Below are positions 21,401 to 63,361 of a stretch of 64,000 bases of DNA, piece after piece. Both the position numbers and the translations under genes were made by a program. This DNA is from Mytilus californianus (Eukaryota), in contig NW_026262581.1 in NCBI RefSeq assembly GCF_021869535.1, positions 96,906,001 through 96,970,000 of the forward strand, read 5' to 3'. A model generated the notes under the pieces. It searched no databases and was not told where the DNA came from. It saw only the letters and a list, made by a program, of their open reading frames with translations. The number at the start of each line of letters is the position of its first letter. The first letter of the stretch is position 1.

Positions 21401-24400
21401 ACCATGTCCGCTACACTCAACATCAGTAGAAGGATGTCTGGGACATCCTGGTACTTCACAATATTTTCCACTCCAGCCAACCAATGGATCACAGTAACAG
21501 CTTCCATCATTAGCACACACACCATTCCCTGAACATTCTATGTCACAACCAGTACCATGGTAACATATCTTTTCACAGATACAAATATTTTGATCATCAG
21601 GTAAGCCATATACACATGGATCCCCACAGGCTGATCCTGCCCATTCATCATCACAGTTCGAACATTGAGGTGGGTCAAAGGTTGTATTACAGTATCCATG
21701 ACTATTACAGTTAGGATCACCAGGACAATCGGGAGATCCACAATCAGGGCCTAAAATTCATGAGGTTACATTACTTACTAAAAAAAGTAATGATTAAGTT
21801 CAATAAGCATGTTTGAAAAACAGCTGTGTGATAAACATTTATTACAAATAACCTATTACCAAAAGTCCAATTTTTGTACCATTCTTAGCACATAAGTCTA
21901 GAACCACGAAAAAATGAAAGTTTTCACAACTTAAGGAATCCTCAGACACCCAATCTCAATCATTTGTTTAAGAAACCACTCAAAAGCATAGTTCAGTTGG
22001 AGTATTACTTGTTTGTAAAGGGTCAAGTCATTGGCAATTATACCACATCTTCTTATTTCATATTCAAAAAAGTTTGAAAGAAATATGACTAAACTTTCTT
22101 GAATTACTGAGCATGACATGAAGGACAGTACAATGTACATCGGTACACATGTATACCATAATACACATACAATAGCAAATTTTACTATTTGTTTAAGTAT
22201 AACTGTGTACAAAAATGTAGATAGTGAAGTTTCTTTTTTGTTTACTTGCTTACAAAAGAACATAATATCTCCATTGTACAGATCTAGAGTATGACCAACA
22301 AAGTCTACCTTTTCATTCAAAAATCCAATGGAAGAAAAGGTTATCATATTTTTTACGAGTTTAATATCAGAAAAAAAAAAATAATCATACGGTAGTTTAG
22401 TTCAACAAACTAACCTGACCATCCAGGATCACAGACACATGTACCAATGCCTGCCAGACAGATACCATGTCCAGAGCATGACTGGGTGTTGATGGAAGGA
22501 CACCCTGGTCTGGTACATTTATCTTCCTGCCAGTTATCAGTACAACTACAGATACCATCAACACAGCTACCATGATCATTACATTCTGATTCACAGAACT
22601 CTCCAAGATGGCATTCATCACATTCACATTTGTCCCCAACACATTGTCCTTGACCTCCACAAAGGACAGAACAGTCATCACCAAGGTAACAAGGATCACA
22701 GATGCAAGTTCCAATAGCAGTACATTTTCCATTTCCAGAGCAAGTTGTATCATCATGGCAGTTACTATCACATCGATGCCCAACATAGCCTGCTTCACAA
22801 ATACAAGTTCCATCTTGAGCACATTTTCCCTGTCCTGAACAAGTTATAGCAGCAGTGCAGTTGTACTGGCAGTCCATACCAACATACCCTGAATCACAGC
22901 TACAAGCACCTGACACGAATGATCCATGATTACTGCAGAGACCACCAGATGAATCACAAAGAGATCCAGTGCCTCCACTTCCATAGTTACCTGATCCACC
23001 ACTGACATAACGTTGGTTGTATAAGACCTTGTGTGTATAGTTTCCAGTATATGTTCTAATTCTACCTCCTCCACCACCACCACCATAGTAGTAACAGTTG
23101 TAATAGGCATTGGAACCACCACCTCCATTGGCTGTCACTTCACCCCATCCCTCAATAATCTCACTATCCAGCCACACAGAGCCACCACTGCCACCAGCAC
23201 CACCAGACACTCCCTTTGCACCGTCCATATCAACTGTTCCCTCCAAATACATGGCATTTCTGGTGATGACCTTGATAGCTGAGCCTCCCCATCCTCCTTC
23301 AGCCAAATAGTGGCTACCACGTGCCCCTCCACTTCCAGCAGTGATTGGCAGACAGACTTCGTCATATGTAGATGTACTACCATAACAATATGAATGACAG
23401 TTACTGTAACCACGACCTCCATTACCCCCATGGGCAGCTCCACCAGCTCCACTACAAGAGCTTCCAGCTCCTGGTCCAGAGGCTGGTGGGTACCCAAGCC
23501 TCAGTCCTAGGACAGTGCTGGACTTCTCAACGTCAAACACACCACCAAATACAGTACCAGATGGATAAATTTCAAACAAACCAGTATGTTCAACGTGGAT
23601 AAAGTCAGCCACTAGGTATACGCCATTGTCTGTTGTATAGTCCGTATCATTTAATGCCATTTTACCTCCAGCAAGCACTGTAGCTGATGTTAACTGATAT
23701 GCTCCTGTTATTTCTTCACCAGAATTGGCCATCAAATTGCCAACACTAGTTAACCTGCTTGTTCCTCTTGTGTATAAGTGATCTAACCCAGTCATGGTTC
23801 CATAGATGGTCATTGTTTGTTCTATGAAGATTGTGGATGCATACATGATTTTGGAATCTTTCATACCATATAAGTTAGCTCCAATAGTATCCTTTAGTTT
23901 GGAAGTAGAAATCTTTACAGAAATACCAGCTTCAACTTGTAGTAATCCTGTTCCACTGTGTACGTGACCAACATACAAAGGTGTCTGCAAAAATATTAGA
24001 ATTGTTAAATATTAAAAAGTAATTACTACATGTATGTGGCCATCCCCTGCTGTCACTGACACAAAATTTATTTTAATTGTACATGTAATACCTACAAATT
24101 AGCAATTTTTCACAGTACATTAAGGAACTTTAGCAGACAACAACCAATAATGCATAAAATTTAATTTTCAGGAATTAAGTTTCATTACAGAAATTTCATT
24201 CAAATAATTAAGATTCAAAGCAATTAAAGTCTACAAACATGTAAAATGCACATTATACTCTAAACGAAACTCAGTGAGATCATGATAAAGCAGCCAGTAG
24301 TTTAACAAGAAACTGCAAATAAGACAAAAAAAAAACATAAAAGGAATTTAAACAAAAACTTAAAAACTTAAAATCAAACATTGAAAAAAAAATGGATGTT

Positions 24401-27400: not shown

Positions 27401-30400
27401 ACTTAGCAATATTTTCAAAGTCTATAGACCATGACTGAGGGGGCGATACCAAATATTCTCCATGGAAATGAGATATGCCAATGCTTATACAACTGCATAA
27501 CAAATAGCATTGACCTACCACTAGTGGTTCCCAATAAATTGACCTAATCACAAACTAATACATGTTAACTATGAAAAGTTTCAAAGTCAATAGACCTTGA
27601 CTGAGGGGGCAGGGCCAAATAATCTCCATGGTAATGAGATGTGCCAATGCTAATACAACTGCATACCAAATATCATTGACCTACCACTAGTGGTTCACCA
27701 TGAACTAGACTTAATCACAAACTAATACATTGTTGACGCCGCCGTCGCCGGAAACAACATACCTATGTCTCGCTTTTTGACTCCGTCAAGGCAAGACAAA
27801 AATTGTCATTAAAGGGCAATAATTCCAAGAAGACGATGGACGATTTCCTCTATATTGTCTTAATTGTAGATCTTGTCTTGCTGATCATTTTTGCTTATTT
27901 AGAGGTTTCTATCTATCTATAACAATTTTTAAGATACAAGGCAAAAACGCAAAAAAATTGGTAAAAATCATCATCAAAGGGCAATAACTCTAATAAGGAG
28001 TCGGCTGACGATTTCGACAATGTGAACTTATTTGTAAAACTTATCTTGCACATAATTTTTGCAATTTGATGTTTTTCTGTATCTATTATAGTTTTCAAGA
28101 TAATAGGCAAAATTGAAAAAAATGGTAAAATTTGTCATTAAAGGGCAATAACTCCAATTAGAAGTCATTTCACAATTTTAACTTATTTGGACAATAGGTA
28201 GAGCTCAACATTCTGAACATTTTTGCTCCAGTCAGATTTTTTCTATTCATAACAGTTTTCAAAATAATAGACAAAACTTGCATTTTAACCCTATGTTCTA
28301 TTTTTAGCCATGGTGGCCATGTTGGTTGGGAGGCTGGGTCATAGGACACGGTCACACATACAAATACTTTTGCTTGAGACATATTTCTGTACGTTTGGAA
28401 AGAATTCAAAACTTCATTATGAAAAAGACAAGATGTAGTCCTCACTTATTAACAAGATGTAGTGCTCACTTATACTGATGACTTACCTCCCATACACTGA
28501 TGATAATACAACTACCATCTATTCTACAGCTGGTCCAATCCTTTCAACTCCCTGGTTCTGATGACTTACCTCACCTACCCCTAAACTGATAAAAGACTAA
28601 CACCACCTCATCAACCTGGTTCTGATGACTGACCACCTCCTCTACCACTGGTCACATAACCTCCACTTACAGGTTCTGATGACTTACCTCTCCTACATTG
28701 ATAGTGATATGACTACCATCTGCTCCACCCCTGGTACCACCTCCTCCACTTCCAGGTTCTGATGACTTACCTCCCCTACATTGATAGTGATATGACTGCC
28801 ACATGCTCCACCACTGGTACCACCTCCTCCACTTCCAGGTTCTGATGACTTACCTCCCCTACATTGATAGTGATATGACTGCCACCTGCTCCACCACTGG
28901 TACCACCTCCTCCACTTCCAGGTTCAGATGCTGTTAATACTGATCCATACTGATTGCCAACTGTGGTTGTGTCATAACTTCTGCCTCCTAAACATTTAAT
29001 TTTCAAGATAGTTTATCATGTTGTTTTAGTTAAATTCATAAAAAACAACTTAAACTATAATTGAATTTTTACAAAAGATGCATTCAAAAATATTTCAATA
29101 GTAAAAGTTATTTGCACGCTAACTGAATCATACAATAAACTGGGTATACTTAATCATACAAAGAAATATTTACAACTGAAATCAACATTTAGAATTACAG
29201 TAAATTCAGAAATTTTTGCAAAGTTTTTTATAATAGCAAAAATGGGGACAGAATGGGTTTTACATAAATAATTACTTGCACTTCAATTTTTAAAAACATT
29301 CATATTTGTATGTCACAATAACTAATTTCGCATTTGTTTCCATTGTTCAACAAATACAATGGTAAATGGACACACAGTTTCTGAACTTACAGTAATCAGA
29401 ATAACAATATTGAACTTTATCAAAGAGTTGATGTAGAAAAATTGTTATCACAAACTTCTGAAAAAATTTCAAGAAATACCAAGTTTCCATTTTTTATGTG
29501 TTCTTCTTGTAATTATATCCATTTAAATCCCCAAATAAATAATGTTTAGCTGAAAAATACTAATTTCTTTTAAAAAAAATAGCTCCCCAAAAAGGTCCTT
29601 TCACTTTAACAATCATGTTTTGTTTACCTGCACTGCCATGTCCAGCTCCAGATGAATCATGGGAAGATCTGATACCTGCTCCATCACCCTCCTCAAATCC
29701 ATAGCCATGACCATCACCAGTAACAGTTCCACCTTTTTCTACTGTTATCATGGTAGCATTTAAGGTGACCTTCAAAGTGTCAGTTTCTACAGTACCTCCA
29801 TTCTTCACAGTTAGATTTCCTACTTGGAATGTTGGAATCAAAGGATCAATAGTCACAGTTATTTTCCCTAGATTTTTCACATCTAAAGTTCCAACAGCAA
29901 TTAACCCTGGAGCATAACTAGTCTCTGGCATTTCTGTATACCACATGACCAGAGATTTAATCTGGCTTGTGTGAGCTTGTTCAGATATTGTTAGTTCTGC
30001 ATTACGTTCTATGTAAAGATTTTCTACTCCAACCATTCTTCCACTAAGAATAAATCTTTCAGTTGTCAATATGAAGTCAGTTGGCATTACTAGTTCTCCT
30101 CCAATATCAACATGGAAACCACAAGGAGCATCAAGGTATGTATGAGTAGATTCTATATAGTTAACAATTACTTGTTGTCGCTTCTGGATACGAACAAGAC
30201 CTTTCTTGTTACCTGTAAGTTCATGGATAATCACAGTTAGATTTTTAGTTCCTTTAGGATGATAGAAGTGCACATATGAGTATCCCTCCACTTGAACCTC
30301 ATCAAATTCATAATACACACTATTGTTTTCCATTACCATGGCTGGGTTGTCTGTTGTTAAGTCACCATTATCTACTAATAATTTTGAATGCTCTGGTTGA

Positions 30401-51400: not shown

Positions 51401-54400
51401 AATTCTAAGATAGTCAGTTGTAAAGGTTTTCCTGTTGTCTCAAATGTCACAGTAGCATAGTCTTTGATTGTAAAGTTAGCAAATTTGTAAGCACCTGCTT
51501 CCTGAGCCTCAAATACACCTTCTTTGTATGTAGCTGTCCTGGTTTCTGCTGACAGTACAGCTGTTTGCCCAGATGCAATAATCAAATTCTGAATGTTTGT
51601 TAGCGTTCCTTTGTAAAAGAATAAACTTTAAGGTAAATTCATTTGAACAACGTTTAAAACTTTATTGTATTCAGGAATATATGTAAGTGTTATTTACACA
51701 GAATGAGACATCCATCATTTTTTAATTTTCTAATATTCCATATAAGTAAACTTTTACCTGTCGATTTATCATTTCTGTCCACCTTAGATATCTCCTTTTC
51801 CTGGTGGTAGTCCAAATGTCCGATCCTTCATTCTGGTCAATCCACTTATCAAACCAACTAATTGATTTGTTGTAAAATTCTTTCTTGTCATGAATATGTA
51901 TGAAATATTTGCCACTGGACATTAAGTAAACAACAATCAATCAATCAATCAATCAATCAATTTGTTTTGTTTGTGATCTTAAAAGAATAAAATTAATAAC
52001 AAACAAAACTATTAATATTGCAAATTTTCACTTTACATAATGAAACTTTAATCACTGAGATTAACTGAATATTATAAACATCCTTACATACCTTTGAGCT
52101 GATTATCTGATCCTAGAAGTTCTACTTTCTTGGGAAGTCTAGTCTCACCAAGCTGTTGTAGATGTAGACTACATGTCAGTTTACTATACTCTGATGATAC
52201 ATCCGCACTGAATATTGTGTTGTCATTGACCACAAGGAAAGAATCAGATCCACATGTTAACTCATTGGCAATAAAGTGTAGATTTTCTGTCAGGATACTA
52301 ACAGTAGCAGAATCACCAACTTCTAACTCATTTACAGTGACCTCTGTTTGCCCAGGGAGGTCAATGATGGTATTGGCAATAGAACTTCCTTCAATACCTG
52401 CATTATCTGACAATAATTTACGGTATGCCAAATTATTGATGAGGTAATTCAGGTAAGCTGTTCCAGCACCACCTGCTTCTGATGAATTAGAATTACCTCC
52501 CTTTAGAGTGTAGTCCCCTGTAAAGTTGTAATCTCCAGTTACATCTAGGTACATTCTTCCACCACCACCGCCGCCAGCACTATCGGTTGCATTACCACCT
52601 ATTACAGATATAGAACCAGATCCGGTAAAATCCACTGTATCTATGTATACTGATCCACCACTTCCTCCTCCACCATTGCCTTCACCATTGTTACCATGGG
52701 AAGTTATCATTCCACTCAAGGTCAACAACTCAGTAACCTTGAATTTGACAATACCTCCACCACTTCCTCCAGTTCCTCCAGAAGTTGTGTCCCCACCAGC
52801 TGAACCAAAGTTGACAGCAGTGAATACTGATCCAACATAGTCAACTAAAGATTCTGATCCAGAGCTTGATGCTCCCCCAGAACCACCATGACTTCCACCA
52901 GAACCATCCTGTCCTACACCAGATCCAGGATCAGAACTACTACCATCAACACCAATCAGCCCATCAAAGGCTACTTGCACAGTAGGTGCCTTGATATACA
53001 CATTTCTTCCTTTAATTTCACCTCCATATTTGACGTTCAGTTCATCCAAGACTTCAATTGTGTACTGGTTTTTAGAGTCAGTGGAAACTTCCATGAGACC
53101 ATCTGTAGTGACATCTAGGTTTGAAAGAGAGAAGGATCCAGCATCTGAAAGTTGTGCTGTAGTTAGACCACTCCTGGCAGTAGAACTGAATGACACTTTA
53201 CCATAAGAAGCCACAATGAGATTTCGGACAGCTATGGCATTTCCCTTCACATCCAAGTTTATCTCCTCATCATCTGTCTCATCCTCTAGTTGCAGTCGTG
53301 CAGGAAGCGTGGCATATCCATTTTCTTCAATCAGAATCTTACATGGCAGAACAAAAGCATACTGTGTACCATAACTGGTTGCTATGATAAAATACTGATT
53401 TTCCTGTACAGTAAGCAGCCCTGTATAATCTCCCTCTATCAATGATATCTCAAAGTTAGACCCACCACTGGAATCAAATACTACTTTGGCCTTTCCATTC
53501 AAATCTATTGTTGACACTGTTGTGACACCAGTAATGACTGTTTGGGAATCAGTAGAAAGTCCATTATTGTTAATTTGTAGTTCTGTTTTTGAAGCACCAC
53601 CAGAAAGTTCAGATACCAAATAAACAGAGCCTGCAGCTCCATTGGAAGTCCCACCTTCACCACCCAAAGAAGACAGGAATCCATAAAAGGATGAAATAGC
53701 CTTTACATCTAAAGCCATGCGCCCTCCTCCACCACCACCTTTATTTGCACTGGTACCTCCATTGACAGAGATGGTACCATGACCTTCTAGACTGTCTCCA
53801 GTAATTTTGATGCTGCCACCACTTCCACCTCCGGTGTTTTCACCATTCTCCCCTTCAGCTGTTAGAAATCCATCTATGGAAAGAGTTGTAGCTTGGATGG
53901 AAATGACTCCACCACCATGAACAGAAGTACAACCACTGCCAGGATCTACAGGTGATGTGGTGGAGCCATATGTTGTTCCAGTATTACCTCCTCCTTCTCC
54001 ACCATAACTAGCACCTTTCTCAGAGTTACCTGCCCCTGATCCCGTGGTTGAGCCTCCATGAGATACTGACAACACAGCATCTTCTTCTATTATACAATCA
54101 GTTGTCACTAAATTGAATGATTTAGAAGTTGTTGTGATTTCAATTTCTGATTTTATCTTCATGTGGAATTTTGTTAATGACAGGCTAATGCTGTCTTCAT
54201 TTAATATTAGTTTTGCAGCATATCCTAGAGTAAGTGACTGAATCCCACTGTATGTGGCTCCTGATTTTATTTCCATCTCGGTACTTTCTTGTAATTCTAA
54301 GGAGGTGGCATCCAATGTTCCTGTTGAAGATATAGTGACAGAGCCACGATCCCAAACACTGAAATCTGACACTGTCAATGTTCCCTTCAGATCTAAGGTA

Positions 54401-57400
54401 GGACTTTCACCAGTCAAATCAAAGTCTGATGTAACTTCTAGTGTGGCCCCTTCATCAACAACAAAATTACACTGACATCCATGGTTCAGATCATCAAATG
54501 CTGATATAGTCATCTTAGCATTGTTTGTAATAGTAACAGTACCAGTTCCATCAGATGACAATTTAGCCACTGTAAGAGCTGTTTCTAGTGATAATGATGC
54601 ACTGTTTGTAACCTGAAGTTCATTTAAAGAGGTTGGTAATGATATTCCACTAATTAGTTCTGTAGATCCAGCATGATCTAACACTAAGACTGTTGTTCCT
54701 GATTTGTCCAAGTAAACAGTTCCTGAAAAATCAAGTTATTTAATTACTTGGTATTCAACTTTTACCTTAGACACAAAAATGTATAATCAAATGTGTATAA
54801 ACTTTCATGAATTTCCTTTTACTTCATTAATTACTCATTGATTTGTTACAATAGAACTTTTACTTACTAATTTAAATGACCTAATTCAAGATTTTCATTG
54901 ATAAACATAACATTTCGCTGCATTTCTATAATATATCTGCCAAAGAAATGTTCCCCATCCTCAACCAAAATATAACTGCAACAAGTCTTGACAGTAAAAT
55001 ATTTTTATTACCTTTTTTTTGTATTTTCTTAGAATGTTCTGAATTGACCTTTTGAAATTGGAACTTGTAAACTGGCAATAAAAAAATATATGCAAAAATG
55101 AAACAACTACAAGGAACTATTTGCTTCATCTTATTTTTGCATAATTGGATTTAAAACTTCCTTGTTTACAATATCCATCTGACAAATCAATTTACCTGGT
55201 GATCCATTTCCATCAGCTGATTCAACAGAAATCAATCCATCACTAAAGTCATAGGACGAGGATGAAATAACAGATATTCTTCCACCTCCTCCTCCACCAG
55301 AGCCTCCCTGAGCAAGTATTTTTCCAGTCCCTGTCAATGTTTTACACTGTATCAGTATACTCCCACCGCTGCCACCAGATGTTCCAGATGCACCATTCAT
55401 GTTGACTTCACCATTCAGAGTGAAAGTATTTGTAACAGAGAACTCAATCTGACCACCACCTGCTACAGAGCCATGTCCATTACTGCCATAGTGTCTGGGA
55501 TACACAATACTACCATAAAGTTTGTTTGGATTATCTTTTCCTGATCCACCATAACTGGCCCCATTACTGCTACTAGCTGCAGCACCTGGGCCACCTGAGG
55601 TGTATCCTTTGCCTTCACCAGTAATTTTTCCTCCAAACATTACGTTAATTGAGCCACTATTGATTTTCGTCAGATTTCTATAAGTATCCCCTTTTATAGT
55701 GAGAGTTCCTCCAGCTTCAATTGTAATACTGGTGAATGTGTGTGTTCCAGGATTCAGCTCACATGAAGAACCTTTGTAGATATACATCTTTTGACCTGAA
55801 CATGTGGCAGTGCTTGTTTGACTGATCTGGTTTGTTTTATAACCACTCTTCAGTGAAATGTAGGTAGAAGGGAATGAATAACTACCTGATATGTTATAAT
55901 TGGTTAATTCTAGTTGTATCTGTTGAGTAGGACGGATACATGTACTTGTGTGTTCTATGTTACCACCATCGTCAATAACTAGATCTGTAAGTGTTATTTT
56001 GCTGGTTGTTGTAGTGTCCACATAAGAGATGCCTGTGTTGGCTGGTGAACCTATTTTATAAATGCCACCATTCCGAATAACTACAATTTTTGTTTTTGAA
56101 TTAACTGTTCCACACAGCTCCAAGTAGTAATCTTTTTCCACATTAACTGTTGCTGGAAGTTCAATTTTCCCGTAACTACTGACATACACATTAGCTCTGA
56201 GAAACAACTCTGTCAATGCATTTGGATATCTTGTGGATAAGTACACCTCTGTATAGCTGTCCACTGTAAAGTTAGAGTCAGTTGTATCTGTGGTGATAGT
56301 ACCAACTGTTGCCCCAAGGGATTCTCCTACAGTTAATCTCTTACCAAAGGAGACTCTGGAAGCAGTTTTGATATTAATTTCGTCCACCTGTACAGTTGAT
56401 TCTGTTGTTGGTACAGGTAGTCTGGTAAAAGTATCAGTTGTGTGAATGTTTTTCACTATCACCTGCAAATATGTATTCCAGTTAGTTTTTCAGATATTTA
56501 CATGGTAAATTTCTCTGTTTGAAACATGTTTTTAAAATTGAGAATGGGAGAGGGGAATGTGTCAAAGAGACAACAACCCGACCATAGAGCAGACAACAGC
56601 CGAAGACCACCAATGGGTCTTCAATGCAGCGAGTAACTCCTGCACCCAGAGGTGTCCTTCAGCTGGCCCCTAAACAAATATGTATACTAGTTCAGTGATA
56701 ATGGACGTCATACTAAACTCCAAATTATACACAAGAAACTAAAATTAAAAATGATACCAGATTAACAAAGGCCAGAGGCTCCTGACTTGGGACAGGCGCA
56801 AAAATGCGGCGGGGTTAAACATGTTTTTTGAGATCTCAACCCTCCCCTATACCTCTAGCAAATGTAGAAAAAACAAATGCACAACAGTACGCACAGTAAA
56901 ACTCAGCTAAAGAGAAGTCCTAGTCTGATGTCAGAATAGGAAACAAAAGAAATAAACAAAATGACAATAATACATAAATAACAACAGACTACTAGCAGTT
57001 ACTGACATGCCAGCTCCAGACCTCAATTAAACTGATTGAAAGATTATGTCTTCATCATATGAATTTCAGGCACAATCCCTCCTGTTAGGGGTTTAGTATT
57101 ATACCATCATAAAATATATGAGAAGAACATAACCCGTGTCATGCCAACAACTGGTTTTAGAATAAATATGTTTAATTCCGATGCAAAGACCCTATAAGTG
57201 AATCAATATTAAAGCCAAAATATGCAATCTTTAATGACCTGACAACAGAATCGTAACTATATCCCTTCTTAATAAGTCTGTTTAAAGGTTTTGTTAGCTT
57301 TTGAGGTGAATACTGACATTTTTGTGCTTTGTAAAGAATATTACCATAAAAGATTGGATGTGAAATACCCGAACGTATAAGATGTCTGCATGTTGAGTTA

Positions 57401-60400
57401 TATTTACGAATGATGTCCTTATACCGATGATAAAATTTAGTAAATGTTTTGATTAGTTTATGATATCGAAAACTCTGGTGTAATAATTTTTCAGTAATAC
57501 ATAAATTTCTCTCGCTAAAATCTAATAAGTTGTTACATACACGAGAGAATCGTACAAGTTGAGATATATAAACACCATAAGATGGTGACAAGGGAACGTC
57601 ACCATCTAATAAACAGCTGCGCCATGAGCGCATGATACGCCCGTCGTCTTGTGTGTGAATTTTTATGCAATAAGCATAAATAGTTTCTGACATACGGCGT
57701 GACATGAAAAAAAAAAAAACTTTTTTTTTACAAAAGTCTCAATATCTCTAAAATAAAATTTTGAATCAAAACCAAAAAGTATACAGATCTTAAGATTAAT
57801 ATAACTAAGAAGTGTGTAAAATTTAAAGCAATAATCATAAATCGTTTTTGAGATACGGCACAACATGTGAAAACCCCCTCCCCCTTTTTTTACAAAATAC
57901 TCAATAACTCAAAAATAAAATTTTGAATCATCACCAAAAAGTATACAGATCTTCAGGTTAATATAACTAAGAAGTTTGTAAAATTTTAAGCAATAATCAT
58001 AAACTGTTTTTGAGATACGGCGCGACATGTGAAAAAAAACACACACCTGTTTTAGTTACTAAGTCCCGTAACTCAAAAAGTTTTAATTTTATTTTCACCA
58101 AAAAGTATACAGATCGTTTGACCATCATAAGAAACAACTATGTTAAGTTTCATGAAATTTGGATAAGTCATTCTCAAGTTACGGTGCGACATGTTTACGC
58201 CGGACAGACAGACGGACGGACAGACGGATGGACGCTGGACATTTGTTTACCATAATACGTCCCGTCAAAAATTTGACGGGTGTATAAAAATGGATAATTA
58301 ATGATAAGAAATGAAAAATCATCTCTTTTATCATAAATTTTTGTATTAAGCTTCCCGTTAATGATATAGATATCAAGATCAAGGAAAGGACAGTGGTCAT
58401 TGTTAGTATTAGCTTTATTTAAAGTAAGTTCAACAGGATAAATTTCTTTAGTATACATACTGAAGTCTTCATTATTGAGAGCCAATATATCATCCAAATA
58501 TCTAAAAGTATTGTTACATTTTTGTATCAGATGTTGTTTCGATGGGTCTATGCTGATTTTAGTCATAAATTGTAACTCATAACAATACAAAAACAGGTCC
58601 GCAATAAGTGGTGCACAGTTAGTCCCCATTGGAATTCCGATAACTTGACGATATACGTAATCTCCAAAGCGAACAAAAATGTTATCAAGTAAAAATTCAA
58701 GGGCAGATATAGTATCAAAGCATGTCCAATTGACATAGTTCTTTTGTTTGTTGCTACTAAAAAATGACCTAAAAGAGTTTGAACATATGTATTCGCATTC
58801 CGACTTTTTAAATGCCCATTTAATTAGGTGTGTCAATTTTTTCTTAATAAGAATATGAGGCAAAGTGGTATATAGGGTAGAAAAATCTAAACTTTGAACC
58901 GATTCAAAATCACCAATATATGCATGCAATTTATCAAGTACTTCCAACGAGTTTTTGACACTCCAAAAGTAGTTAATTCCACTATTTTTAAAGGCCTTAT
59001 TTGAACAAGGCCTTTTTGCATTTAATTCATTTCTTGTATAAAAATTAATTTCCCACTATTTTATTCTGAAGATTTTTCTTCCTTAAAACTTATATTTTAC
59101 TGTGAAACTTATTTTTACTATTTCTTTTTGATAGCAGGATATGTAACACCTATTGGTATTATTGACTATATATATTCACTTAAGAAAGAAGAATCAAGGG
59201 TGCTACTTGACATTTTGAGAATAACACATGACTTTAAATTACTCCACTTGTACTATAGCCCAAATGTGAACATTCTTACTGTATTGTTTTAATCATATAT
59301 TGTTTTGAATACCTTTCTATTGGGACTGATTCCATTAACATCTTGACCAAGGTAGACAACTCCAGCACCACCATCCTCCCCACCTCCATTACCTGCACCA
59401 CCGTAGGAAGTAAGTTCACCATAGATGTTACCAGAAACATAAACAAGGGAGATTAATCCTCCCCCTCCTCCTCCTCCATTATAACCATTGCCTCCATTCA
59501 CATTGATGGCTCCTGAAGACAAGATAATAAAAAAATCAAATATGTGCTATCTATGATATTGAGGAAATTAATCTTAAAATTTCCTTACAAAGAATGTTGA
59601 AATGGTATTTACTCTATATTTTTTAAAACAGAATGCTCTGCAATAAAAATTTGATACCAATTAATTTTTTTATGACAATAATTTTCTGAGGGATGACATG
59701 CTGTATTCAACTATTTATGTTTTGATTTATAAATTCAATACACCTGTAGTCTAATTTCTTTTTTTAATCAAATCATTATAAAGCCTGGTTAAATGTATTA
59801 GATATGTAATATATTAAATAAGACAAAAATGAGGAAGAAAAAGAAACATACCTGTAACATCAGCAGAATCAGCTGTTATCCAGATACTTCCTCCAGAGCC
59901 TCCACCACTGTTTGCCGAGGCATTCTCTCCTCTAAATAAAAAGCAATGTGTTTAGTCTATATTGTATACATGTATTAGAAAAAAGAACATATAGGATAGA
60001 TACATAACATAATATTTCTCATTAATTAATATATTGGGCCCCAGTAGGGTACCACCCTTAGGTTGCAATAGGATGTCTCTTAAAAATGCCTCAAGTCACC
60101 AGGTCGCTTATAAGCAAATTTAGGTAAGTCTAATAAGTAAGATTTTGAACATTTTTAAAAGGTCATAGGTCACAGATCGTTTTAAATGAGACATCAATGT
60201 TGCAAGGTCACTGGTCAGATTTTACCCTGTTGGAGCAAAATATATCAAAAGAACAGATTTGATTGATTATTCAAAAATATATCTAAATCATAGTGAAACT
60301 TTCAATCATCATTAAAAAAAAATGCTCTTTTCTTTTTCTTCCATAGCACCCTACAGTTCATCATTCAAATTCTTTGATTTAAACATTTCTCACAATTAAT

Positions 60401-63361
60401 TTTCAGTATTAATATAAGTATCTATACGGGTAAATTTTCACTGAGAATAATTGTTCATCCGTTCTTAACTTGTAGTAACTGATTGATCATCATACCATGA
60501 TTAGAAAGGTTTTACTGCAGCTTTATCCAAATTTATTTTTTCGTTCTTTAATTAAAACTTTTTATAAATTTCTTAGAGAAATGTATTGCTTGCAATGCAA
60601 TTTTCCTTATAATTACTATTTTCAAGGGGCATAACTTTTTGAAAAATAGTTGATTGGCACTGAATTTCGAACTTGTCAGCGACATTGCTGATATAAACCT
60701 TTGATATAAATTTGATAAAAGTATTGCAAGAATTGTACATTTGAAAGTGCTAACAATGCAATTTTCCATATAATGAATATTTCCTAGGGGCATTCCTCTT
60801 TGAAAAATAGTAGATCAGCACCGATTTTTCGAAATTGTTCGAATTCCATAAGATGAATAATTGTTATAGCTGTAATCATAATAACATACCTGGCATTCAA
60901 CTCTCCTTTATGAGTGAGCGTTGTAGCTGTAATTTTGAGTACACCCCCACCAGCTGTTGACTGACCACCTTTACCATGTAAGGTTGGTTGTGTGAAATGA
61001 TCATAGGCATCAATCAGACTCATGTTGGTTCCTATGATACCTCCTTCACCTCCATGGCCAGCTCCAGAATAATCTGAAAAGAAAACCAGTCAACATCTTA
61101 AATATTGATTGATTGATTGTTTGGTGTTAAACGCCACTATCATCACTATTGTGGCACTCAGTTTTTATTGGTGGAGGAAGCATGAGTGCCTGGGCAGGAC
61201 CACGACTTTCAGTAGGAAAACTGACAATCCTAGTCAATTAAGATTGGAGTCAAGCACACCTGCCACTTGCAGGATTTTAACTCACAACCTCAGAGTTGAC
61301 AGTCTAGTGTTACAGAACATTTTAAATACTAATAAACTCATTCATTAAACTTTATTTAGTACTGTTCTTTTATTTCTTAGAAATTAAATGGAACTTAACT
61401 TGAAAAAATGATATATACTTACAAACTGTATAATGAGAATTATATCTAAACTGTCTCCTTCAACTTATTCACTAATTGTATGCATATTTTAAATTTCATA
61501 CAGGCACAAAAACAATGTGGATAGCTTACCAGTTTAATAAGTTGACAGAATTGTCCAATTTTTATTTTGAAATCAGAAACCTAAGAGAACATTCATATAA
61601 AATTTGGTGCAGATTATATCTACCGTACTAATGTTTGAAAAGATTTTTGAATGCATAATGTAATACATACTAAATAAATGTGACAGAAGTATAATTGAGC
61701 ATGGGCAATGAATGTAAAATTTGAAGGGAACTGAATTTGGAACATCACAGAATATAAAATCACTGATTTACCCAGTATTTTCTATCTTTTTTCTGGGTTC
61801 ATGTTGTTTAGTATGCAGAAATATCTGACATAACTTTGTGCCATACATCCCGAGTATAATTGTTCTCAAGTTTGGTTTTATCAGCCAAGAAGTTTCAAAA
61901 GAAAATACTTTTTAAACAGTTAACAGGCAGAAGTCTGATGCCTAGTAACTACACCAACTTAAAAATCAAATTTTTGCTAATTAATATTTTACAATGAAAC
62001 CATGAAGTTTGGTCAATGGTATAATCATTTCATTGTTATGCTATTTACAGTAAATGAAAGGTATAGTTTTCAGTACTTGAAAAAGAGCCAAATGAATCAT
62101 CCCTATATAAAAAATCTGGATGCATTATCTTTGTTTTTATTTTTTCTATTGTTTTTATTCAGAACAATTACCATTTCCGCCATCCCCAGCATCCCCACGG
62201 TGATCAAGGTTTATAATTCCTCCTTCTTCAGTTTCAACCTCTGTTGCTGTAACTGTCAGTTTTTTGGCAATTATCTCCCCTGAGGCACCAATCAACAGTT
62301 TATACAAGTCCATATTGTATTCCACATCTGCATCTACCAAGTAAAGTGTACTGTTCTGCTTCACGTTTAAGTTCTGCATGGAGTAAGTAGAAGTAGTTGT
62401 ATGTGTTTGGCTTGTTTTTGATAGAGTCAAATTGGTTTTAAACAAGGTCAGGTCCTGTAAACCTCCTAAGGTTCCATCTATATAGTTTACAGTGCTAAAC
62501 CACTTGACTGTGGATGGTAATGTCAGTATTCCATTTTCATAGACTTTGGCATGTGCTGGGAAATATAAAGATACTTGTCTGATGGTTATTTCACGGTTTG
62601 CTCCAACAAGTAACGTTCCAATTTTGTTTGGTTCCTTTACAAAGTCATCATTTCCAGAGAAACTGAGGGCTAACAGAGAGTTGATTGCACTGCTGTCAGC
62701 ACTGGGTTCTAGTGCCAGGTGAGCACCATTCAGCAGCTGCAACTGATCCACCTGTATTGAATTACTGTCAGTAAATGTTATCCAAGTTCTGCTGCTTTCA
62801 TTGGCTTTTATTGTGTCTAACTCAAGGTCTGCTGAATAGTCCTACAATCAAGATTCAACTTTTATATTTCATAAACCACAGTTCACATTTTTTTCCAATT
62901 TACTTTGAAAATGTGTTTTTTTTAATTCCTATACATTTTCATGTAGTAATCAATACAGTCATCAATTTGTGTTGTTGTTACATCACATTTTCATTTCCCT
63001 TGAACCTAAACCATTTACAATTAAGGCGTTATTATTTTTCAGTACTGTGACAAGATTCCTTGCCAGGTAACTTTGATTGGCAGTTACAAGTGAGGATAAA
63101 AAAGTTCAAAACTGGATTGAATAAAAACAGCTAGCTAAATTTCCTTCTGTCGGCTATTTTTATTACTTACTCCTACATTATGAGCCACTTGGTTGTCTAC
63201 AATGATTTTAGTTTTGGATCCTGTTACGACATACACTGTACCGGCACCACCATAACCAGCTGATGACTGTCCACCATAGGCAGAGGTGTCACCTGTGAAA
63301 CCCGAGGATGTGCAATATACAGCTGAACGACCTCCAGCCCCACCTCCTGTACTACTGGTTC
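1..63361 (-). CDS. Giant multi-exon gene (38 exons in window, >=9,320 aa, incomplete at both ends): Gly-rich ~400-aa repeat array + EGF-like array + VWD/LamG-like C-terminal region; probably extracellular
   Basis: Hand-spliced: 38 exons with GT-AG boundaries, all 37 phases compatible (24 phase-1, 9 phase-0, 4 phase-2), 27,972 nt open; motifs read continuously across junctions (e.g. TVGTI|DIKYG, NVGE|TLHLDG, PHL|DNVTEE). Confidence 0.92.
3067..3193 (-). CDS. Exon 37 (127 nt), second half of YTAWFGY module
   Basis: ttgtag|G...CTA|gtaagt; phase 2 to 0; K-FDGTSDVSWNVLSSFANKWWSTHLY...PHL; needed to join exon 36 to exon 38 in frame. Confidence 0.88.
3623..4535 (+). mobile_element. Non-autonomous Helentron/DINE-like repeat (host of the LINE); residual arm at ~6414-6470
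   Basis: About 240 bp (ttcgctgagc..agctggatac..ggtccaaccctgaacag..) shared with 39805-40045; internal short tandem repeats (ccccctttttttgcccctaat). Classification by resemblance. Confidence 0.6.
4536..6414 (+). mobile_element. 5'-truncated CR1/L2-group LINE with intact RT frame and (ATT)n tail
   Basis: ORF 4696-6114 with NYRPISVL, DFKKAFD, GVPQGSILGPLLF, YADD; frame also open upstream to ~4540; aataaa then (att)n at ~6378-6414; no endonuclease in the fragment. Confidence 0.93.
4696..6114 (+). CDS. Non-LTR retrotransposon reverse transcriptase (partial ORF2)
   Basis: Canonical non-LTR RT motifs in the 472-aa ORF. Confidence 0.9.
   Translation: MIDTGIYPSLLKNAKVTPVYKDGDKVLATNYRPISVLPSLSKVLERHVSNNMYKYLSKFKLLHPTQSGFRPHHSCQTALIDIIDKWLQEMNDGNLNLAILLDFKKAFDLVDHDILCLKLAIYGFSESAVGFFRSYLSNRTQQVNICNVNSDKKDVKFGVPQGSILGPLLFVLFINDLPLCIKNCKTDLYADDTTLHKSGKNIENLHDDVQEDLCRVEEWCKINNMFINTKKTKCLVTGTSQKLSTQSFQPNLLINSETLQNSSCEKLLGVKIDSTLSWTNQIDQICASISSRIYLLSKLKKFLDINARKAYYNGYILPLIDYCCIVWGECKNEGMVRILKLQKRAARLILDADPLSPSAPLFKELGWMTVENRIKYHKYLLLHKCMRKEAPQYLLQKFQLISVNNPYALRGVTQGNLIVPKPKTELFKKSFAYSGSVLWNGLPYEMRKVQNTFSFKQIIKQYLRQSQYSVLK
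6523..6808 (-). CDS. Exon 36 (286 nt), EGF end + first half of YTAWFGY module
   Basis: atttag|AT...AA|gtaagt; phase 1 to 2; DFVGPGHCTIPC...DGSYTAWFGYNNANG...PTQFRPG. Confidence 0.9.
7205..7318 (-). CDS. Exon 35 (114 nt), laminin-type EGF
   Basis: ctacag|GT...G|gtatgt; GGDVCECYDDHTNGHWTGEACDACVTGWGLPFCTDCDP. Confidence 0.9.
7605..7757. repeat. Imperfect ~75-bp-arm palindrome (MITE/Helitron-like)
   Basis: aaggaatgactg...aataacccg-tgtag-cgggttatt...cagtcattcctt. Confidence 0.7.
7996..8184 (-). CDS. Exon 34 (189 nt), EGF-like
   Basis: ttacag|GA...G|gtaaga; GDCLLLEGNIAPVCVCEHGFTGLSC... Confidence 0.9.
8424..8545. repeat. Short imperfect palindrome (MITE-like)
   Basis: atatctgcccagctattatt...tttgccctctggcaaa...aataacagggcagatat. 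Confidence 0.5.
8748..8882 (-). CDS. Exon 33 (135 nt), EGF-like
   Basis: tttcag|GT...G|gtaaga; GEPDCNTYGLC...CPGSPKCSGN. Confidence 0.9.
9379..9871. repeat. 30-bp minisatellite, ~16 copies (acatgacaagaaaccagtttactgtacaac)
   Basis: Direct tandem copies read in sequence; a 155-bp five-monomer block is itself duplicated. Confidence 0.97.
10280..10531 (-). CDS. Exon 32 (252 nt), EGF-like
   Basis: tatcag|GT...G|gtatgt; GTCDVENYFPPKC...ITDCP. Confidence 0.9.
11337..11513 (-). CDS. Exon 31 (177 nt), EGF-like
   Basis: taacag|GA...G|gtaagt; GDDCTDRGCPG...DPDCNGL. Confidence 0.9.
11797..11917. mobile_element. Short interspersed repeat fragment (SINE-like); related copies at ~17040-17098 (inverted) and ~51085-51155
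   Basis: Shared terminus gttgtctcattggcaatcataccaca..ttattttt seen three times in the window. Confidence 0.65.
12023..13765 (-). CDS. Exon 30 (1,743 nt), ~4 EGF super-repeats
   Basis: ttttag|GA...G|gtaagt; matches 595-aa Cys-rich ORF 12003-13790. Confidence 0.95.
13995..14940 (+). mobile_element. Helentron/DINE-like non-autonomous element with ~161-bp tandem core (~5.3 copies) and 3' stem-loop
   Basis: aagttagagaa recurs at 14004, 14167, (14209), 14369, 14531, 14692, 14853; ends atgccccc-ttcgctacggc-aggggcat-aaaa. Confidence 0.75.
15155..15760 (+). mobile_element. 3' fragment of a second CR1/L2-type LINE
   Basis: LPHVRTTAYGLQSLRYEGAKLWNELP..WCGSSCQCFAC* then 3' UTR, aataaa and (ttatgtc)n tail. 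Confidence 0.8.
15988..16158 (-). CDS. Exon 29 (171 nt), EGF-like
   Basis: ttatag|GA...G|gttagt; GNSWVGELCEETGCPG...PECS. Confidence 0.88.
16821..16989 (-). CDS. Exon 28 (169 nt), EGF-like
   Basis: ttgtag|GGC...G|gtaaac; GWYTEDCSKPCENG...TEP. Confidence 0.88.
17464..17598. repeat. Near-perfect palindromic MITE-like element with an internal duplication of one arm
   Basis: agtgtgctagtgacctaatacgatatatatggggtcag...(arm repeated)...catatg...ctgaccccatatatatcgtattaggtcactagcacact. Confidence 0.75.
17872..17978 (-). CDS. Exon 27 (107 nt), EGF-like
   Basis: ctacag|GT...GAG|gtaaag; GWTGDACDIPDCPGGCEGNGFC...CACLE. Confidence 0.88.
18179..18387. mobile_element. MITE with ~24-bp TIRs; related copies at ~29196-29394 and partial at ~2580-2753 and ~63390-63520
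   Basis: tactgaaaattcagaaattattgc ... gcaataatttctgaatttacagta. Confidence 0.75.
18726..19396 (-). CDS. Exon 26 (671 nt), EGF-like repeats
   Basis: tttcag|A TGT GAT...G|gtaaat; phase 2 to 1; CDEKWFGHSC...CTCVP. Confidence 0.9.
19871..20012 (-). CDS. Exon 25 (142 nt), EGF-like
   Basis: tttaag|GT...AA|gtatgt; GGCESATHTCTCRPGWTGIGC...PDCK. Confidence 0.88.
20572..20884. mobile_element. MITE with 13-bp TIRs flanked by TA
   Basis: ta|catacctgccaac ... gttggcaggtctg|ta. Confidence 0.7.
21007..21750 (-). CDS. Exon 24 (744 nt), EGF-like repeats
   Basis: ttttag|GC...G|gtaaga; GPDCGSPDCPGDPNCNSHG...LDCSDR. Confidence 0.92.
22415..23984 (-). CDS. Exon 23 (1,570 nt): last Gly-rich unit fused directly to first EGF repeats
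   Basis: ttgcag|ACA...G|gttagt; ORF 22410-23990. Confidence 0.94.
24916..24957 (+). ncRNA. Decayed type I hammerhead ribozyme motif in a short interspersed repeat
   Basis: cgtca-CTGATGA-gtct(tttgt)agat-GAAA-tgtgtttc-tggca: stem I, core and stem II recognisable; stem III degraded. Confidence 0.6.
25040..25317 (-). CDS. Exon 22 (278 nt), Gly-rich unit
   Basis: tttcag|CA...AAT|gtaagt; ANGGGSGGRIAI...GGPGTVYVQ..LWIDN. Confidence 0.9.
25690..25870 (-). CDS. Exon 21 (181 nt), Gly-rich unit
   Basis: ttgcag|ACC...G|gtaagt; TLHLDGSISVGG..GGGSGGSVMI; a weaker same-phase donor (gtacaa) lies 21 nt upstream. Confidence 0.85.
26111..26590 (+). mobile_element. Helentron/DINE-like element (two ~187-bp units, (GGAC)n, 3' hairpin)
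   Basis: ccaaaaaaatgact.agtccaactacct repeated; ggacggacggac; atgcccct-cgacattttgtcg-caggggcac. Confidence 0.7.
26600..27800 (+). mobile_element. Helentron/DINE-like element with ~165-bp tandem core (~4 copies), (GCC)n and 3' hairpin
   Basis: caaagtcaat..accatgactgagggggc..atctccatgg repeated ~27085-27730; ends gacgccgccgtcgccgg..gtctcgc..gcaagacaaaaa. Confidence 0.7.
27800..28400. repeat. Degenerate tandem-repeat element (aaagggcaataactcc units)
   Basis: Motif recurs at ~27810, 27977, 28140. Confidence 0.5.
28480..28853 (-). repeat. 83-bp tandem amplification of the exon 20 3' end including the GTAAGT donor
   Basis: Units 28672-28754, 28755-28837, 28838-28920 near identical; degenerate copies to ~28480. 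Confidence 0.9.
28854..28987 (-). CDS. Exon 20 (134 nt), Gly-rich unit
   Basis: gtttag|GA...GAG|gtaagt; GGRSYDTTTVGNQYGSVLTASEPGSGGG...NVGE. Confidence 0.88.
29628..35846 (-). CDS. Exon 19 (6,219 nt), ~5 Gly-rich units
   Basis: tttcag|CT...G|gtaaac; 2,106-aa ORF 29560-35880. Confidence 0.96.
36615..36911 (-). CDS. Exon 18 (297 nt)
   Basis: ttttag|GC...A|gtaagt; GTIAFGKLSL...GGSHGGFGGG. Confidence 0.9.
37216..37265 (-). ncRNA. Minimal type I hammerhead ribozyme motif (same sense as host pre-mRNA)
   Basis: UAUUGUC-CUGAAGA-C-GCCA(CACUUGU)UGGC-GAAAC-AU-GUC-GACCAGAAUA. Confidence 0.7.
37741..37790 (+). ncRNA. Minimal type I hammerhead ribozyme motif (antisense to host gene)
   Basis: UAUUGUC-CUGAAGA-C-GCCA(CGCUUGU)UGGC-GAAAC-AU-GUC-GACCAGAAUA; palindromic ACAUGU at stem III. 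Confidence 0.7.
37954..38311 (-). CDS. Exon 17 (358 nt)
   Basis: ttttag|GCC...G|gtaatt; AMLEIADGG..GDMSGFIHI. Confidence 0.9.
38852..39213 (-). CDS. Exon 16 (362 nt)
   Basis: tatcag|GT...ATG|gtaaat; ELRGHGLVSANGG..GGSGGRIAV..GGPGTVFV. Confidence 0.9.
39397..39630 (-). CDS. Exon 15 (234 nt)
   Basis: cttcag|TA...A|gttggt; FDVTISGGSGYGSLYEPTETGSQGG..GGGSGGSVWI. Confidence 0.85.
39805..41112 (+). mobile_element. Helentron/DINE-like element with ~165-bp tandem core (5-6 copies), microsatellite and 3' hairpin
   Basis: 5' part homologous to 3640-3880; aaaatcaaaagggagc units; ends ggacggacagacgg..ccataatacgtcccgtaaacggccgtataaaaa. Confidence 0.75.
41187..41642 (-). CDS. Exon 14 (456 nt, symmetric phase 1-1): Thr-rich mucin-like flanks around CxNxTx hexapeptide repeats
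   Basis: tttcag|TT...G|gtaaga; EIPTTTTTTTEEP..CDNTTSCENSTECE..TTTPEP. Confidence 0.85.
42526..42700 (-). CDS. Exon 13 (175 nt)
   Basis: taacag|GAT...G|gttagt; DIKYGAEFRAD..GAGHGSQGGGHS. Confidence 0.88.
42953..46965 (-). CDS. Exon 12 (4,013 nt), ~3 Gly-rich units
   Basis: ttacag|GA...ATC|gtatgt; 1,388-aa ORF. Confidence 0.95.
48434..48660 (-). CDS. Exon 11 (227 nt)
   Basis: ttttag|C...G|gtataa; LDFDGTITAYGGG..AGAGTIYI. Confidence 0.87.
49205..49388 (-). CDS. Exon 10 (184 nt)
   Basis: ttctag|GT...AG|gtatgt; GIIKVDG..GGGSGGTIVL..GGAGGRI. Confidence 0.9.
50240..50400 (+). mobile_element. SINE-like interspersed repeat fragment
   Basis: ggagcaggaacctcttacccttccagcgaacctgagttcac..ggggttcttgttgctcaatc resembles an abundant bivalve repeat (recognition from memory). 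Confidence 0.5.
50488..50692 (-). CDS. Exon 9 (205 nt)
   Basis: taacag|ATA...G|gtatgt; ISGENLATGAGHGAPGG..PTETGSGGG. Confidence 0.88.
50905..51250 (-). repeat. Three degenerate tandem copies of the exon 8 3' end
   Basis: Translate as NPGSTIELSG.., NTGSTIDLSGGGY.., NPGSTIDLSGQGY vs exon NPGSTIDLSGGGY. Confidence 0.85.
51268..51608 (-). CDS. Exon 8 (341 nt)
   Basis: acaaag|GA...AAG|gtaaat; GTLTNIQNLIIASG..GTGKGEK. Confidence 0.9.
51760..51960 (+). mobile_element. SINE-like remnant with (TCAA)n tail
   Basis: gccactggacattaag..aacaatcaatcaatcaatcaatc. Confidence 0.5.
52092..54722 (-). CDS. Exon 7 (2,631 nt), ~2 Gly-rich units
   Basis: tttcag|GA...G|gtatgt; 875-aa ORF. Confidence 0.95.
55196..56462 (-). 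CDS. Exon 6 (1,267 nt)
   Basis: ttgcag|GTG...G|gtaaat; 445-aa ORF. Confidence 0.93.
56534..59012 (-). mobile_element. 5'-truncated Penelope-like retroelement (RT is the C-terminal domain, Naiad-like), split by an insertion
   Basis: LDFSTLYT, GIPMGTNCAPLIADLFL, RYLDDI, PFLDL in 58287-59012; frame resumes at 57609 (YPFL|DGDVPLSPSYG) to stop at 57172; long 3' UTR. Confidence 0.85.
57610..58286 (+). mobile_element. Helentron/DINE-like insertion inside the Penelope-like RT
   Basis: Tandem ~150-bp units, (GGAC/AGAC)n, 3' hairpin cccgtcaaaaatttgacggg; inserted in an A/T run with no TSD; same terminus type as 41080-41112. Confidence 0.82.
59313..59512 (-). CDS. Exon 5 (200 nt)
   Basis: cttcag|GA...AAG|gtattc; GAINVNGGNG..GGAGVVYL. 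Confidence 0.9.
59852..59931 (-). CDS. Exon 4 (80 nt)
   Basis: atttag|A...G|gtatgt; RGENASANSGGGSGGSIWITADSADVT. Confidence 0.9.
60890..61073 (-). CDS. Exon 3 (184 nt)
   Basis: tttcag|AT...AG|gtatgt; DYSGAGHGGEGG..GGGVLKI..ELNAR. Confidence 0.9.
61105..61310 (-). mobile_element. Degenerate tRNA-derived SINE with (ATCA)n tail
   Basis: Minus strand starts ..gaggttgtgagttaaaatcctgc (degenerate B-box) and ends in a tetranucleotide tail. Confidence 0.55.
62172..62841 (-). CDS. Exon 2 (670 nt)
   Basis: ttgtag|GAC...G|gtaatt; DYSADLELDTIKANESSRTWITF..GDAGDGGN. Confidence 0.87.
63171..63361 (-). CDS. Exon 1 in window (191 nt); further exons lie upstream
   Basis: ttctag|GA...GGA|gtaagt; GGGAGGRSAVY..GGAGTVYV..IIVDN; begins mid-unit with an acceptor. 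Confidence 0.9.

Follow-up and report, generated by a model that had tools for sequence, protein, structure and literature searches.

The mussel Mytilus californianus carries an array of 17 tandem, glycine-rich (Gly-rich) units of ~420 residues on the minus strand of a 64-kb stretch of its genome (contig NW_026262581.1, positions 96,906,001 to 96,970,000; hereafter the window, in which all positions below are counted). The array sits in one multi-exon, spliced eukaryotic gene, and the region appears to represent the N-terminal two thirds of one very large, expressed bivalve gene. According to structure models, the units would be segments of one continuous right-handed beta-helix and not beads on a string. 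The best explanation, to which a probability of about 55% is assigned and which is drawn by analogy, is a secreted, N-glycosylated matrix or cell-surface protein with a structural or adhesive beta-helix rod.

An initial annotation, made from the letters of the window, had claimed at least 17 units of ~400 amino acids (aa) with a fixed motif order between 22950 and 63361. Patterns for its motifs were scanned on both strands of the window, which gave 62 matches on the minus and 3 on the plus strand. The scan returned the 16 GGSGG cores and the partial upstream unit that had been counted before:

59906, 55376, 53832, 52671, 49344, 46174, 45019, 43747, minus strand: GGG?SGG[STGA]-hydrophobic cores (16 in total, motif scan)
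39433, 35682, 34452, 33153, 31905, 30684, 25804, 23195, minus strand: the remaining GGG?SGG[STGA]-hydrophobic cores (motif scan)
63251, minus strand: GGAGTVY of the partial upstream unit (motif scan)

Two unit profiles were built, the first from four units of the 2115-codon exon and the second from 353 units (130 non-redundant). The second was run by hmmsearch against the open reading frames (ORFs) of all six frames, and each of its 40 domain matches lies on the minus strand. Profile coordinates 1-415 recur in register, unit by unit, from 63362 to 22968; therefore, the array comprises 17 units. The units align as homologues, and both their number and the span agree with the initial annotation. 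They are distributed as follows (profile search, minus strand throughout):

62218..63362: unit 1, partial; profile positions 129-182 at 63362-63210 and 205-415 at 62829-62218
55617..61071: unit 2, intron-split; Gly-block pieces at 61071-60892, 59933-59865 and 59516-59325, beta-helix part at 56408-55617
54088..55628: unit 3; Gly block at 55628-55209, beta-helix part at 54630-54088
52969..54060: unit 4; 197.6 bits, whole inside the exon 52087-54735
51340..52944: unit 5; two pieces, 52944-52087 and 51615-51340
46463..51327: unit 6; five pieces, 51327-51265, 50683-50483, 49392-49201, 48665-48549 and 46939-46463
43019..46450: units 7, 8 and 9; 46450-45296, 45223-44093 and 44008-43019, in one open frame 42896-47083
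36754..42589: unit 10; five pieces, 42589-42527, 39613-39395, 39211-38855, 38269-37961 and 36912-36754
29627..36753: units 11-15; open frame 29563-35907, the exon ending at the transcript-supported donor 29627
36753-36628 and 35847-34747: unit 11
34746-33478, 33483-32203, 32208-30958 and 30963-29737: units 12, 13, 14 and 15
23568..29730: unit 16; exons end at 29627, then 28986-28854, 25870-25690 and 25317-25040, and resume at 23984 (spliced contigs)
22968..23498: unit 17; Gly block only (profile positions 9-173), leading directly into the EGF array

For unit 1, the profile search found no Gly-block start within the window; the unit is cut off near the window end. Each unit is composed of a Gly block (profile positions 1-180, ~180 aa) and a regular beta-helix part (180-415, ~230 aa). 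The consensus of two alignments (A1 and A2) runs GxGAGHGGxGG, YGSxxxPxxxGSGGG, GGxGGGxLxW, GGGSGGSxLI and GxGxIxxxGG, followed by GGGGSGGRIA, GAAGTVY, LxxDN, YEFDE and GDxTGxxH, i.e. the motif order described earlier. The high divergence noted at that time is likewise borne out: Window units are 25-40% identical to unit 12. Among the 130 non-redundant units, nearly all conserved columns are glycine. Recurrent non-Gly positions (unit-12 numbering) are Y45, S47, P51, S56, S104, R141, T174, N211, E243, D273 and Q284. The four large exons encode 15.9% Gly, 0.6% Cys and 52 N-x-S/T sequons. Four unit columns carry an N-glycosylation sequon in 39-58% of the 130 non-redundant units, and the mean is 5.4 sequons per unit.

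The G+C content of the window is 31-43%, and long minus-strand open frames (2115, 1396, 883, 533 and 452 codons) are separated by AT-richer stretches. Units 2, 6, 10 and 16 are intron-split; some others lie whole inside giant exons. Units 11-15 abut without linkers in a single ~6.3-kb exon. Splicing was studied at 23800-29750 with the reads and contigs of four runs, whose RNA origin was only guessed. In three of these runs (X1, X2 and X5, two studies), contigs contain the splice joints 23984/25040, 25317/25690, 25870/28854 and 28986/29627. All four unit-16 introns are GT..AG on the minus strand (CT..AC on the plus strand). The joined exons form a stop-free open frame of 1168 codons that extends from unit 15 over units 16 and 17 into EGF repeats, and the EGF array is continuous with unit 17 in one joined open frame. 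That the contigs are spliced argues for RNA as the source of the runs. Downstream of the array, the following features were found by Pfam (minus strand):

10230..22967: teneurin-type EGF arrays (Pfam EGF_TEN, EGF_Teneurin and EGF_2)
22413-22967, 20996-21757, 18715-19416, 12006-13799 and 10230-10625: EGF exons
2..2551: VWD frame running off the window end; matches to VWD, weak laminin-G-like, laminin-type EGF and EGF

The candidate VWD frame has the same direction as the array gene and is probably its continuation.

Selection was assessed on the five-unit exon by comparison with a 96%-identical relative, a contig from the European Nucleotide Archive (L001). Over 2043 codons, synonymous divergence (dS) is 0.21 and nonsynonymous divergence (dN) 0.017. 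The resulting dN/dS of 0.08 indicates that the gene is under strong purifying selection. One exon end of unit 16 is duplicated:

28625..28930, minus strand: 83-bp tandem repeat, 3.7 copies, 91% match (repeat scan)

This repeat triplicates the last 77 nt of the exon 28854-28986 plus the gtaagt donor, and the first of the triplicated donors is the one used in transcripts. Since 83 is not divisible by 3, splicing from one of the later donors would cause a frameshift. By sequence comparison, the repeat is young since it is absent from the 96%-identical L001. Profile matches in three frames at 28988-28682 were rejected as units, as they correspond to this duplication of the exon end.

The fold was predicted with AlphaFold2 for unit 12 (69-sequence alignment) and for units 12+13 (100-sequence alignment). 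The unit model is all-beta with a mean predicted local distance difference test score (pLDDT) of 94.4 and a predicted template modelling score (pTM) of 0.92. The two-unit model is also all-beta (pLDDT 93.4, pTM 0.87) and reaches pLDDT 97-98 at the junction. Residues 1-72 of the unit lack regular secondary structure, yet they are confidently modelled (pLDDT 89-98). Four rungs that recur every 34 residues make up residues 73-180; each consists of a 12-residue strand and, after a turn, a 3-residue strand and a Gly-rich arc. From residue 205 to 426, the strands are short and the rungs 20-25 residues long. No sign of disorder or of a collagen-like structure, either of which would have spoken against a beta-solenoid, was seen in the models of one and two units: No residue has a pLDDT below 50, and Gly is conserved column by column.

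Foldseek with the unit model did not yield a match in the PDB at E <= 1e-3. The structural check proposed by the initial annotation gave confident models but no hit with that program. The exhaustive aligner VIA-align was more informative. All top matches of the unit are right-handed beta-helices (Z 8-11, 150-280 aligned residues), among them the adhesin domain 4wa0 (Z 10.9), Vag8 (10.6), tapirins (9.5-9.7), TibA (9.5), the HMW1 secretion domain (9.0) and the TMEM2 ectodomain 8c6i (8.8). Single solved helices span the two-unit junction at residue 426: HMW1 aligns with residues 236-681 (Z 10.9), EtpA with 174-592, FHA with 263-613, NosD with 368-828 and PfbA with 373-813. In addition, the profile matches of successive units leave no gap; they abut or share a few residues. 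The models place the unit in the right-handed parallel beta-helix fold, pectate-lyase-like or PbH1 class. Because solved single helices align across the junction, the units are predicted to be segments of one continuous right-handed helix. The beta-solenoid with glycine loops postulated earlier is consistent with both high-confidence models and with the right-handed beta-helix matches, and the ~250 aa of beta-strand-like text following the loops are predicted to belong to the same helix as the Gly block.

When one unit and the five-unit exon were used as queries in word searches, hundreds of relatives came to light; among the matches listed, all are unnamed, 'uncharacterized' or 'hypothetical'. 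They were found in the bivalves Dreissena, Mytilus and Solemya, the sea anemone Actinostola, the coral Desmophyllum, the echinoderms Asterias and Diadema, the hemichordate Ptychodera, amphioxus (Branchiostoma), Ciona and the choanoflagellate Salpingoeca rosetta. No vertebrate protein is among the matches listed. In Ptychodera and Branchiostoma proteins, too, EGF_TEN arrays follow the units. The same phyla contain a second, paralogous family with 25% identity, one member of which (P0196 from Ptychodera) has a signal-peptide-like N-terminus. A maximum-likelihood tree of 33 units, an analysis that the initial annotation had recommended, contains position-specific clades. The unit 15 clade comprises one unit each of Dreissena, Ptychodera, Branchiostoma, Actinostola and Salpingoeca (support 98/94), and the unit 11 clade one unit each of Actinostola and Salpingoeca (support 100/100). 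Units 13 and 14 are younger duplicates. Because the units show position-specific orthology, this sequence tree places the array of distinct units before the animals, in the common ancestor of choanoflagellates and animals. The expansion had been supposed to be old, and the grouping of units with position-matched units across phyla is in agreement with this.

The Gly block alone also occurs in bacterial proteins with domain E-values of 1e-14 to 1e-30. Its sources include Bdellovibrio sp. KM01 (the hypothetical protein P0042), Planctomycetes, Verrucomicrobia, Zixibacteria, Lentisphaerota and others. The regular part (positions 180-415) accompanies it in eukaryotic relatives. Hence, the likeness to bacterial surface proteins that the initial annotation had suggested is supported by sequence for the Gly block only. 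A candidate for a whole bacterial unit (P0018) was not used as bacterial evidence: It comes from a sparse, Pfam-less Tara Oceans scaffold that looks eukaryotic. Another protein (P0001), partial and encoded on a 3-kb contig of an NCBI metagenome-assembled genome of Candidatus Thiodiazotropha sp., is 54% identical to a mussel unit and, as in the animal proteins, comprises both unit parts. It is probably derived from host-clam DNA that was binned into the symbiont genome and not from a bacterial gene. As for plants, a Streptophyta cluster of the ESM Atlas resembles the unit with a template modelling (TM) score of 0.71 over 356 residues (feature score 0.87) and covers ~1.3 units of the two-unit model (565 residues, TM 0.53). 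The likeness to plant proteins that the initial annotation had suggested is thus backed by predicted structure only, and the cluster may correspond to At4g32920/At5g11700.

No Pfam or NCBIfam model covers the unit when single units, 69 units and junction-centred segments are scanned; marginal G8 matches alone were obtained. An AgmC match in the family scans is meaningless. PDB sequence and profile searches did not yield a solved chain related to the unit. For an ALK/LTK-type domain, neither a Pfam Gly_rich match at E up to 10 nor a PDB sequence or profile match was found. The gathering cut-off of Pfam G8 (PF10162) is 22.9 bits. Two near-threshold matches were detected in the window, one with 22.7 bits (ORF 55134-56489, residues 231-289; unit 2 end) and one with 19.3 bits (big exon, residues 2017-2061). 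Above the cut-off are two paralogues, P0200 from Mytilus (30.6 bits) and P0196 from Ptychodera (25.6 bits). All four matches share one location within the unit, where the regular part ends and the following Gly block is about to begin. At E up to 1, no G8 match was obtained for ten unit junctions (four from the window), and among the 69 units scanned one has a match. The end of the regular part, judged from these scores, seems weakly G8-like, a feature absent from the initial annotation. In the ESM Atlas, the named clusters closest to the unit are bacterial G8 clusters and the Streptophyta cluster mentioned above. Read in a shifted register, the unit may represent an iterated module of G8 plus helix that has diverged strongly. 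In the literature, the family was not found described under locus names, DUF8003 or words for the fold and domains. Whereas the fold class is known, the 420-residue unit, the Gly block and the 17-unit animal architecture are undescribed in the resources searched.

How might such a protein be built and act? At least 17 tandem, linker-free units of ~420 residues would stack into one continuous right-handed beta-helix. In each of them, the Gly block would contribute a ~70-residue stretch without regular secondary structure and then ~4 wide rungs of ~34 residues. The regular part would add a ~230-residue right-handed parallel beta-helix whose last rungs are G8-like. With ~15 rungs per unit and a rise of 0.48 nm, a unit would measure ~7 nm and 17 units would yield a rigid rod of ~0.1 micrometre, which would run on into the teneurin-type EGF arrays. 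Secretion and glycosylation are proposed because of the downstream EGF, VWD and laminin-G-like matches, the sequons at four unit positions, the near absence of cysteine from the units and the signal-peptide-like start of the Ptychodera paralogue P0196. Within the extracellular matrix or cell coat, the rod would be a structural or adhesive element: It could act as a stiff fibre or spacer whose repeated face possibly binds glycans. The Cys-rich C-terminal part might mediate multimerisation and anchorage. The structural or adhesive role is suggested by analogy, the models being the beta-helix adhesins of bacteria and the G8/PbH1 proteins of animals, such as that of the Oikopleura house.

Several points weigh against this proposal. 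The functional role is deduced by analogy alone, and straightness, length and surface properties of the rod are deduced from secondary structure and alignments only. The N-terminus of the gene is located outside the window, and a signal peptide was not seen for the mussel gene. The conserved acidic or polar residues E243, D273, Q284 and E292 in the regular part could mark a catalytic or ion-binding site. For the VWD frame 2-2551, membership in the array gene is only probable. Expression is based on spliced contigs from runs whose RNA nature was guessed, and the only run on record as RNA-seq (X21, 6% read) had no depth on the tested exons and covered intronic repeats only.

The main rival considers the units to be tandem glycan-binding or glycan-cleaving modules akin to TMEM2, CEMIP and polysaccharide lyases, i.e. 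the rod to be mainly a multivalent enzyme or lectin instead of a structural element. The four G8-like matches at the same unit place, two of them above the cut-off in paralogues, fit this idea, as do the alignment of the TMEM2 ectodomain with the regular part (Z 8.8-9.3), the presence of RbmB, PL6 and polygalacturonases among the structural matches and the conserved residues E243, D273, E292, D307 and E311. However, most unit junctions have no G8 match, the structural Z values are typical of any beta-helix, and the invariant columns are nearly all glycine. Furthermore, seventeen catalytic copies per chain would be unusual, and no known lyase or hydrolase active-site motif was identified, which renders this alternative rather unlikely. 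Flat Gly/Ser/Thr-rich faces could also template a crystal lattice, as in a biomineral matrix or an ice- or mineral-binding protein. Relatives are present in calcifying bivalves, a stony coral and echinoderms, and the beta-helical antifreeze protein 3p4g is among the structural matches (Z 8.3). Yet, relatives occur equally in a non-calcifying sea anemone, Ciona, amphioxus, a hemichordate and a choanoflagellate. The units lack acidic or Thr ladders such as those known from lattice-binding proteins, their conserved columns being glycine, so that a lattice template is very improbable.

Similarly, but with slightly less credit still, the Gly block might be regarded as a polyglycine-II ligand-binding module outside the beta-helix, like those of ALK/LTK or phage gp38 adhesins. 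Its first ~70 residues are indeed very Gly-rich and, at pLDDT 89-98, without regular secondary structure. Against this, Pfam yielded neither Gly_rich nor any other family at E up to 10, and no solved chain, ALK included, matched by sequence or profile. In the model, residues 73-180 are long strands with a 34-residue period, and solved beta-helices align through the Gly block. Finally, many introns with repeats, the reverse-transcriptase ORF described below and the young 83-bp duplication at one splice donor could suggest that the array is an artefact of low complexity, was duplicated during assembly or is decaying as a pseudogene. This is contradicted by open frames that extend over thousands of codons, by transcript-like contigs that are correctly spliced, by the dN/dS of 0.08, by identities of 25-40% that exclude recent copies, and by orthologues across phyla, and it deserves hardly any weight.

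Animal matrix biology is built on collagens, laminins, fibrillins, strings of immunoglobulin and fibronectin type III (Ig/Fn3) domains and EGF arrays, whereas long, rigid stalks made of a beta-helix are considered typical of bacteria. The mussel gene looks like an animal protein of more than 7000 residues that follows the beta-helical stalk principle, with an array conserved position by position since before animals. Taken together, it is tempting, but only tentative, to see in it an overlooked core component of the holozoan extracellular matrix. Such a component would be pre-metazoan, combine, in the manner of teneurins, a bacterial-type surface module with teneurin-type EGFs and, with at least 17 distinct units, form the longest continuous eukaryotic beta-helix known. 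From choanoflagellates to amphioxus, each of its units would have been retained, with a possible loss in vertebrates, and its Gly block would constitute a new domain family of bacteria, plants and animals. With a profile of the unit, or of the 180 residues of the Gly block, hundreds of large invertebrate, protist and bacterial proteins could be annotated, and possibly the plant PELE family as well. Tractable species such as Salpingoeca rosetta, Ciona and sea anemones have relatives, which makes localisation and knock-out feasible.

The array span and its surroundings contain further elements. Three Gly-poor minus-strand ORFs of 174-286 codons (58198-59055, 57175-57738 and 41143-41664) are situated inside the array span. 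They match no family member, unit profile or Pfam entry and are probably intronic. Between exon-like minus-strand ORFs, a reverse-transcriptase ORF of 472 codons (4696-6114, plus strand; RVT_1, E 3e-30) is a retroelement insertion. The segment 26586-28376 in a unit-16 intron shows very high depth in the RNA-seq run and in transcript-like contigs, with many variant letters and loose ends. This depth originates from a dispersed repeat family transcribed elsewhere in the genome and does not reflect expression of the array gene. In L001 (16058-17940), the distance from the five-unit exon to the EGF exon is ~1.9 kb vs. ~5.6 kb in the window (29627-23984); the difference is approximately the size of the repeat-rich intron segment. 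A scan with Rfam gathering scores detected no family anywhere in the window.

Among known systems, the animal G8+PbH1 proteins (fibrocystin/PKHD1, PKHD1L1, CEMIP, TMEM2/CEMIP2 and oikosin) are alike in that extracellular, glycine-marked modules pass into a right-handed beta-helix without a break. Published work places G8/PbH1 beta-helix proteins outside the cell and describes G8 as continuous with their helix (bioRxiv 10.64898/2026.10.19.758525). The oikosin of the Oikopleura house is a G8/PbH1 protein and a matrix component (PMC3390340). The alignment of the TMEM2 ectodomain 8c6i with the regular part (Z 8.8-9.3) adds to this likeness. In contrast to the at least 17 abutting units found here, however, G8+PbH1 proteins have one or two G8/beta-helix regions among IPT, GG and PA14 domains. 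The Gly block with GGGSGGS and GGRIA lies outside the G8/PbH1 models, and most mussel units are without a G8 match.

Teneurins have the same type of EGF array (Pfam EGF_TEN and EGF_Teneurin). A common theme is that, in choanoflagellates and animals, a bacterial-type module has been joined with EGF repeats. None of the frames tested has a YD-shell or NHL match (the mussel protein ends outside the window), and no Tox-GHH part was seen in the window. The mussel beta-helix array is N-terminal to the EGFs, and no homology was detected apart from these. The mussel gene pairs Gly-block units with teneurin-type EGFs, and teneurins pair such EGFs with the YD shell. A metagenomic protein of bacterial type (P0024, 682 aa) contains two Gly blocks followed by RHS/YD repeats; it may hint at a shared bacterial source of parts for the array gene and teneurins. 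The plant protein PELE (At5g11700) is reported to be a tonoplast protein that has no known domains and possesses a signal peptide as well as four or more transmembrane helices (bioRxiv 10.1101/2024.12.03.626687). PELE and At4g32920 are membrane proteins of ~1450 residues, in contrast to the 17-unit mussel array with EGF and probable VWD modules.

The bacterial Gly-block proteins are true sequence relatives and share YGSxxxP, GGRIA and AGT with the mussel units. They contain two to three copies per protein, most of them without a detectable regular part. Their partners are RHS repeats, CarboxypepD_reg, G8 and tails of the type IX secretion system (T9SS), and they are uncharacterised. The best matches among solved structures, which also span the unit junction, are bacterial beta-helical fibre adhesins (the two-partner-secretion proteins HMW1, FHA and EtpA; the autotransporters TibA, Ag43, Hbp and Vag8; tapirins). 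Here, the common principle is a long stiff helix used as stalk or adhesive surface. There is no sequence relationship, and bacterial adhesins have uniform short rungs whereas the mussel repeat is a two-part unit of 420 residues. The mussel protein differs from them in being eukaryotic, predicted to be secreted and equipped with EGF, probable VWD and laminin-G-like (LamG) modules and N-glycan sequons.

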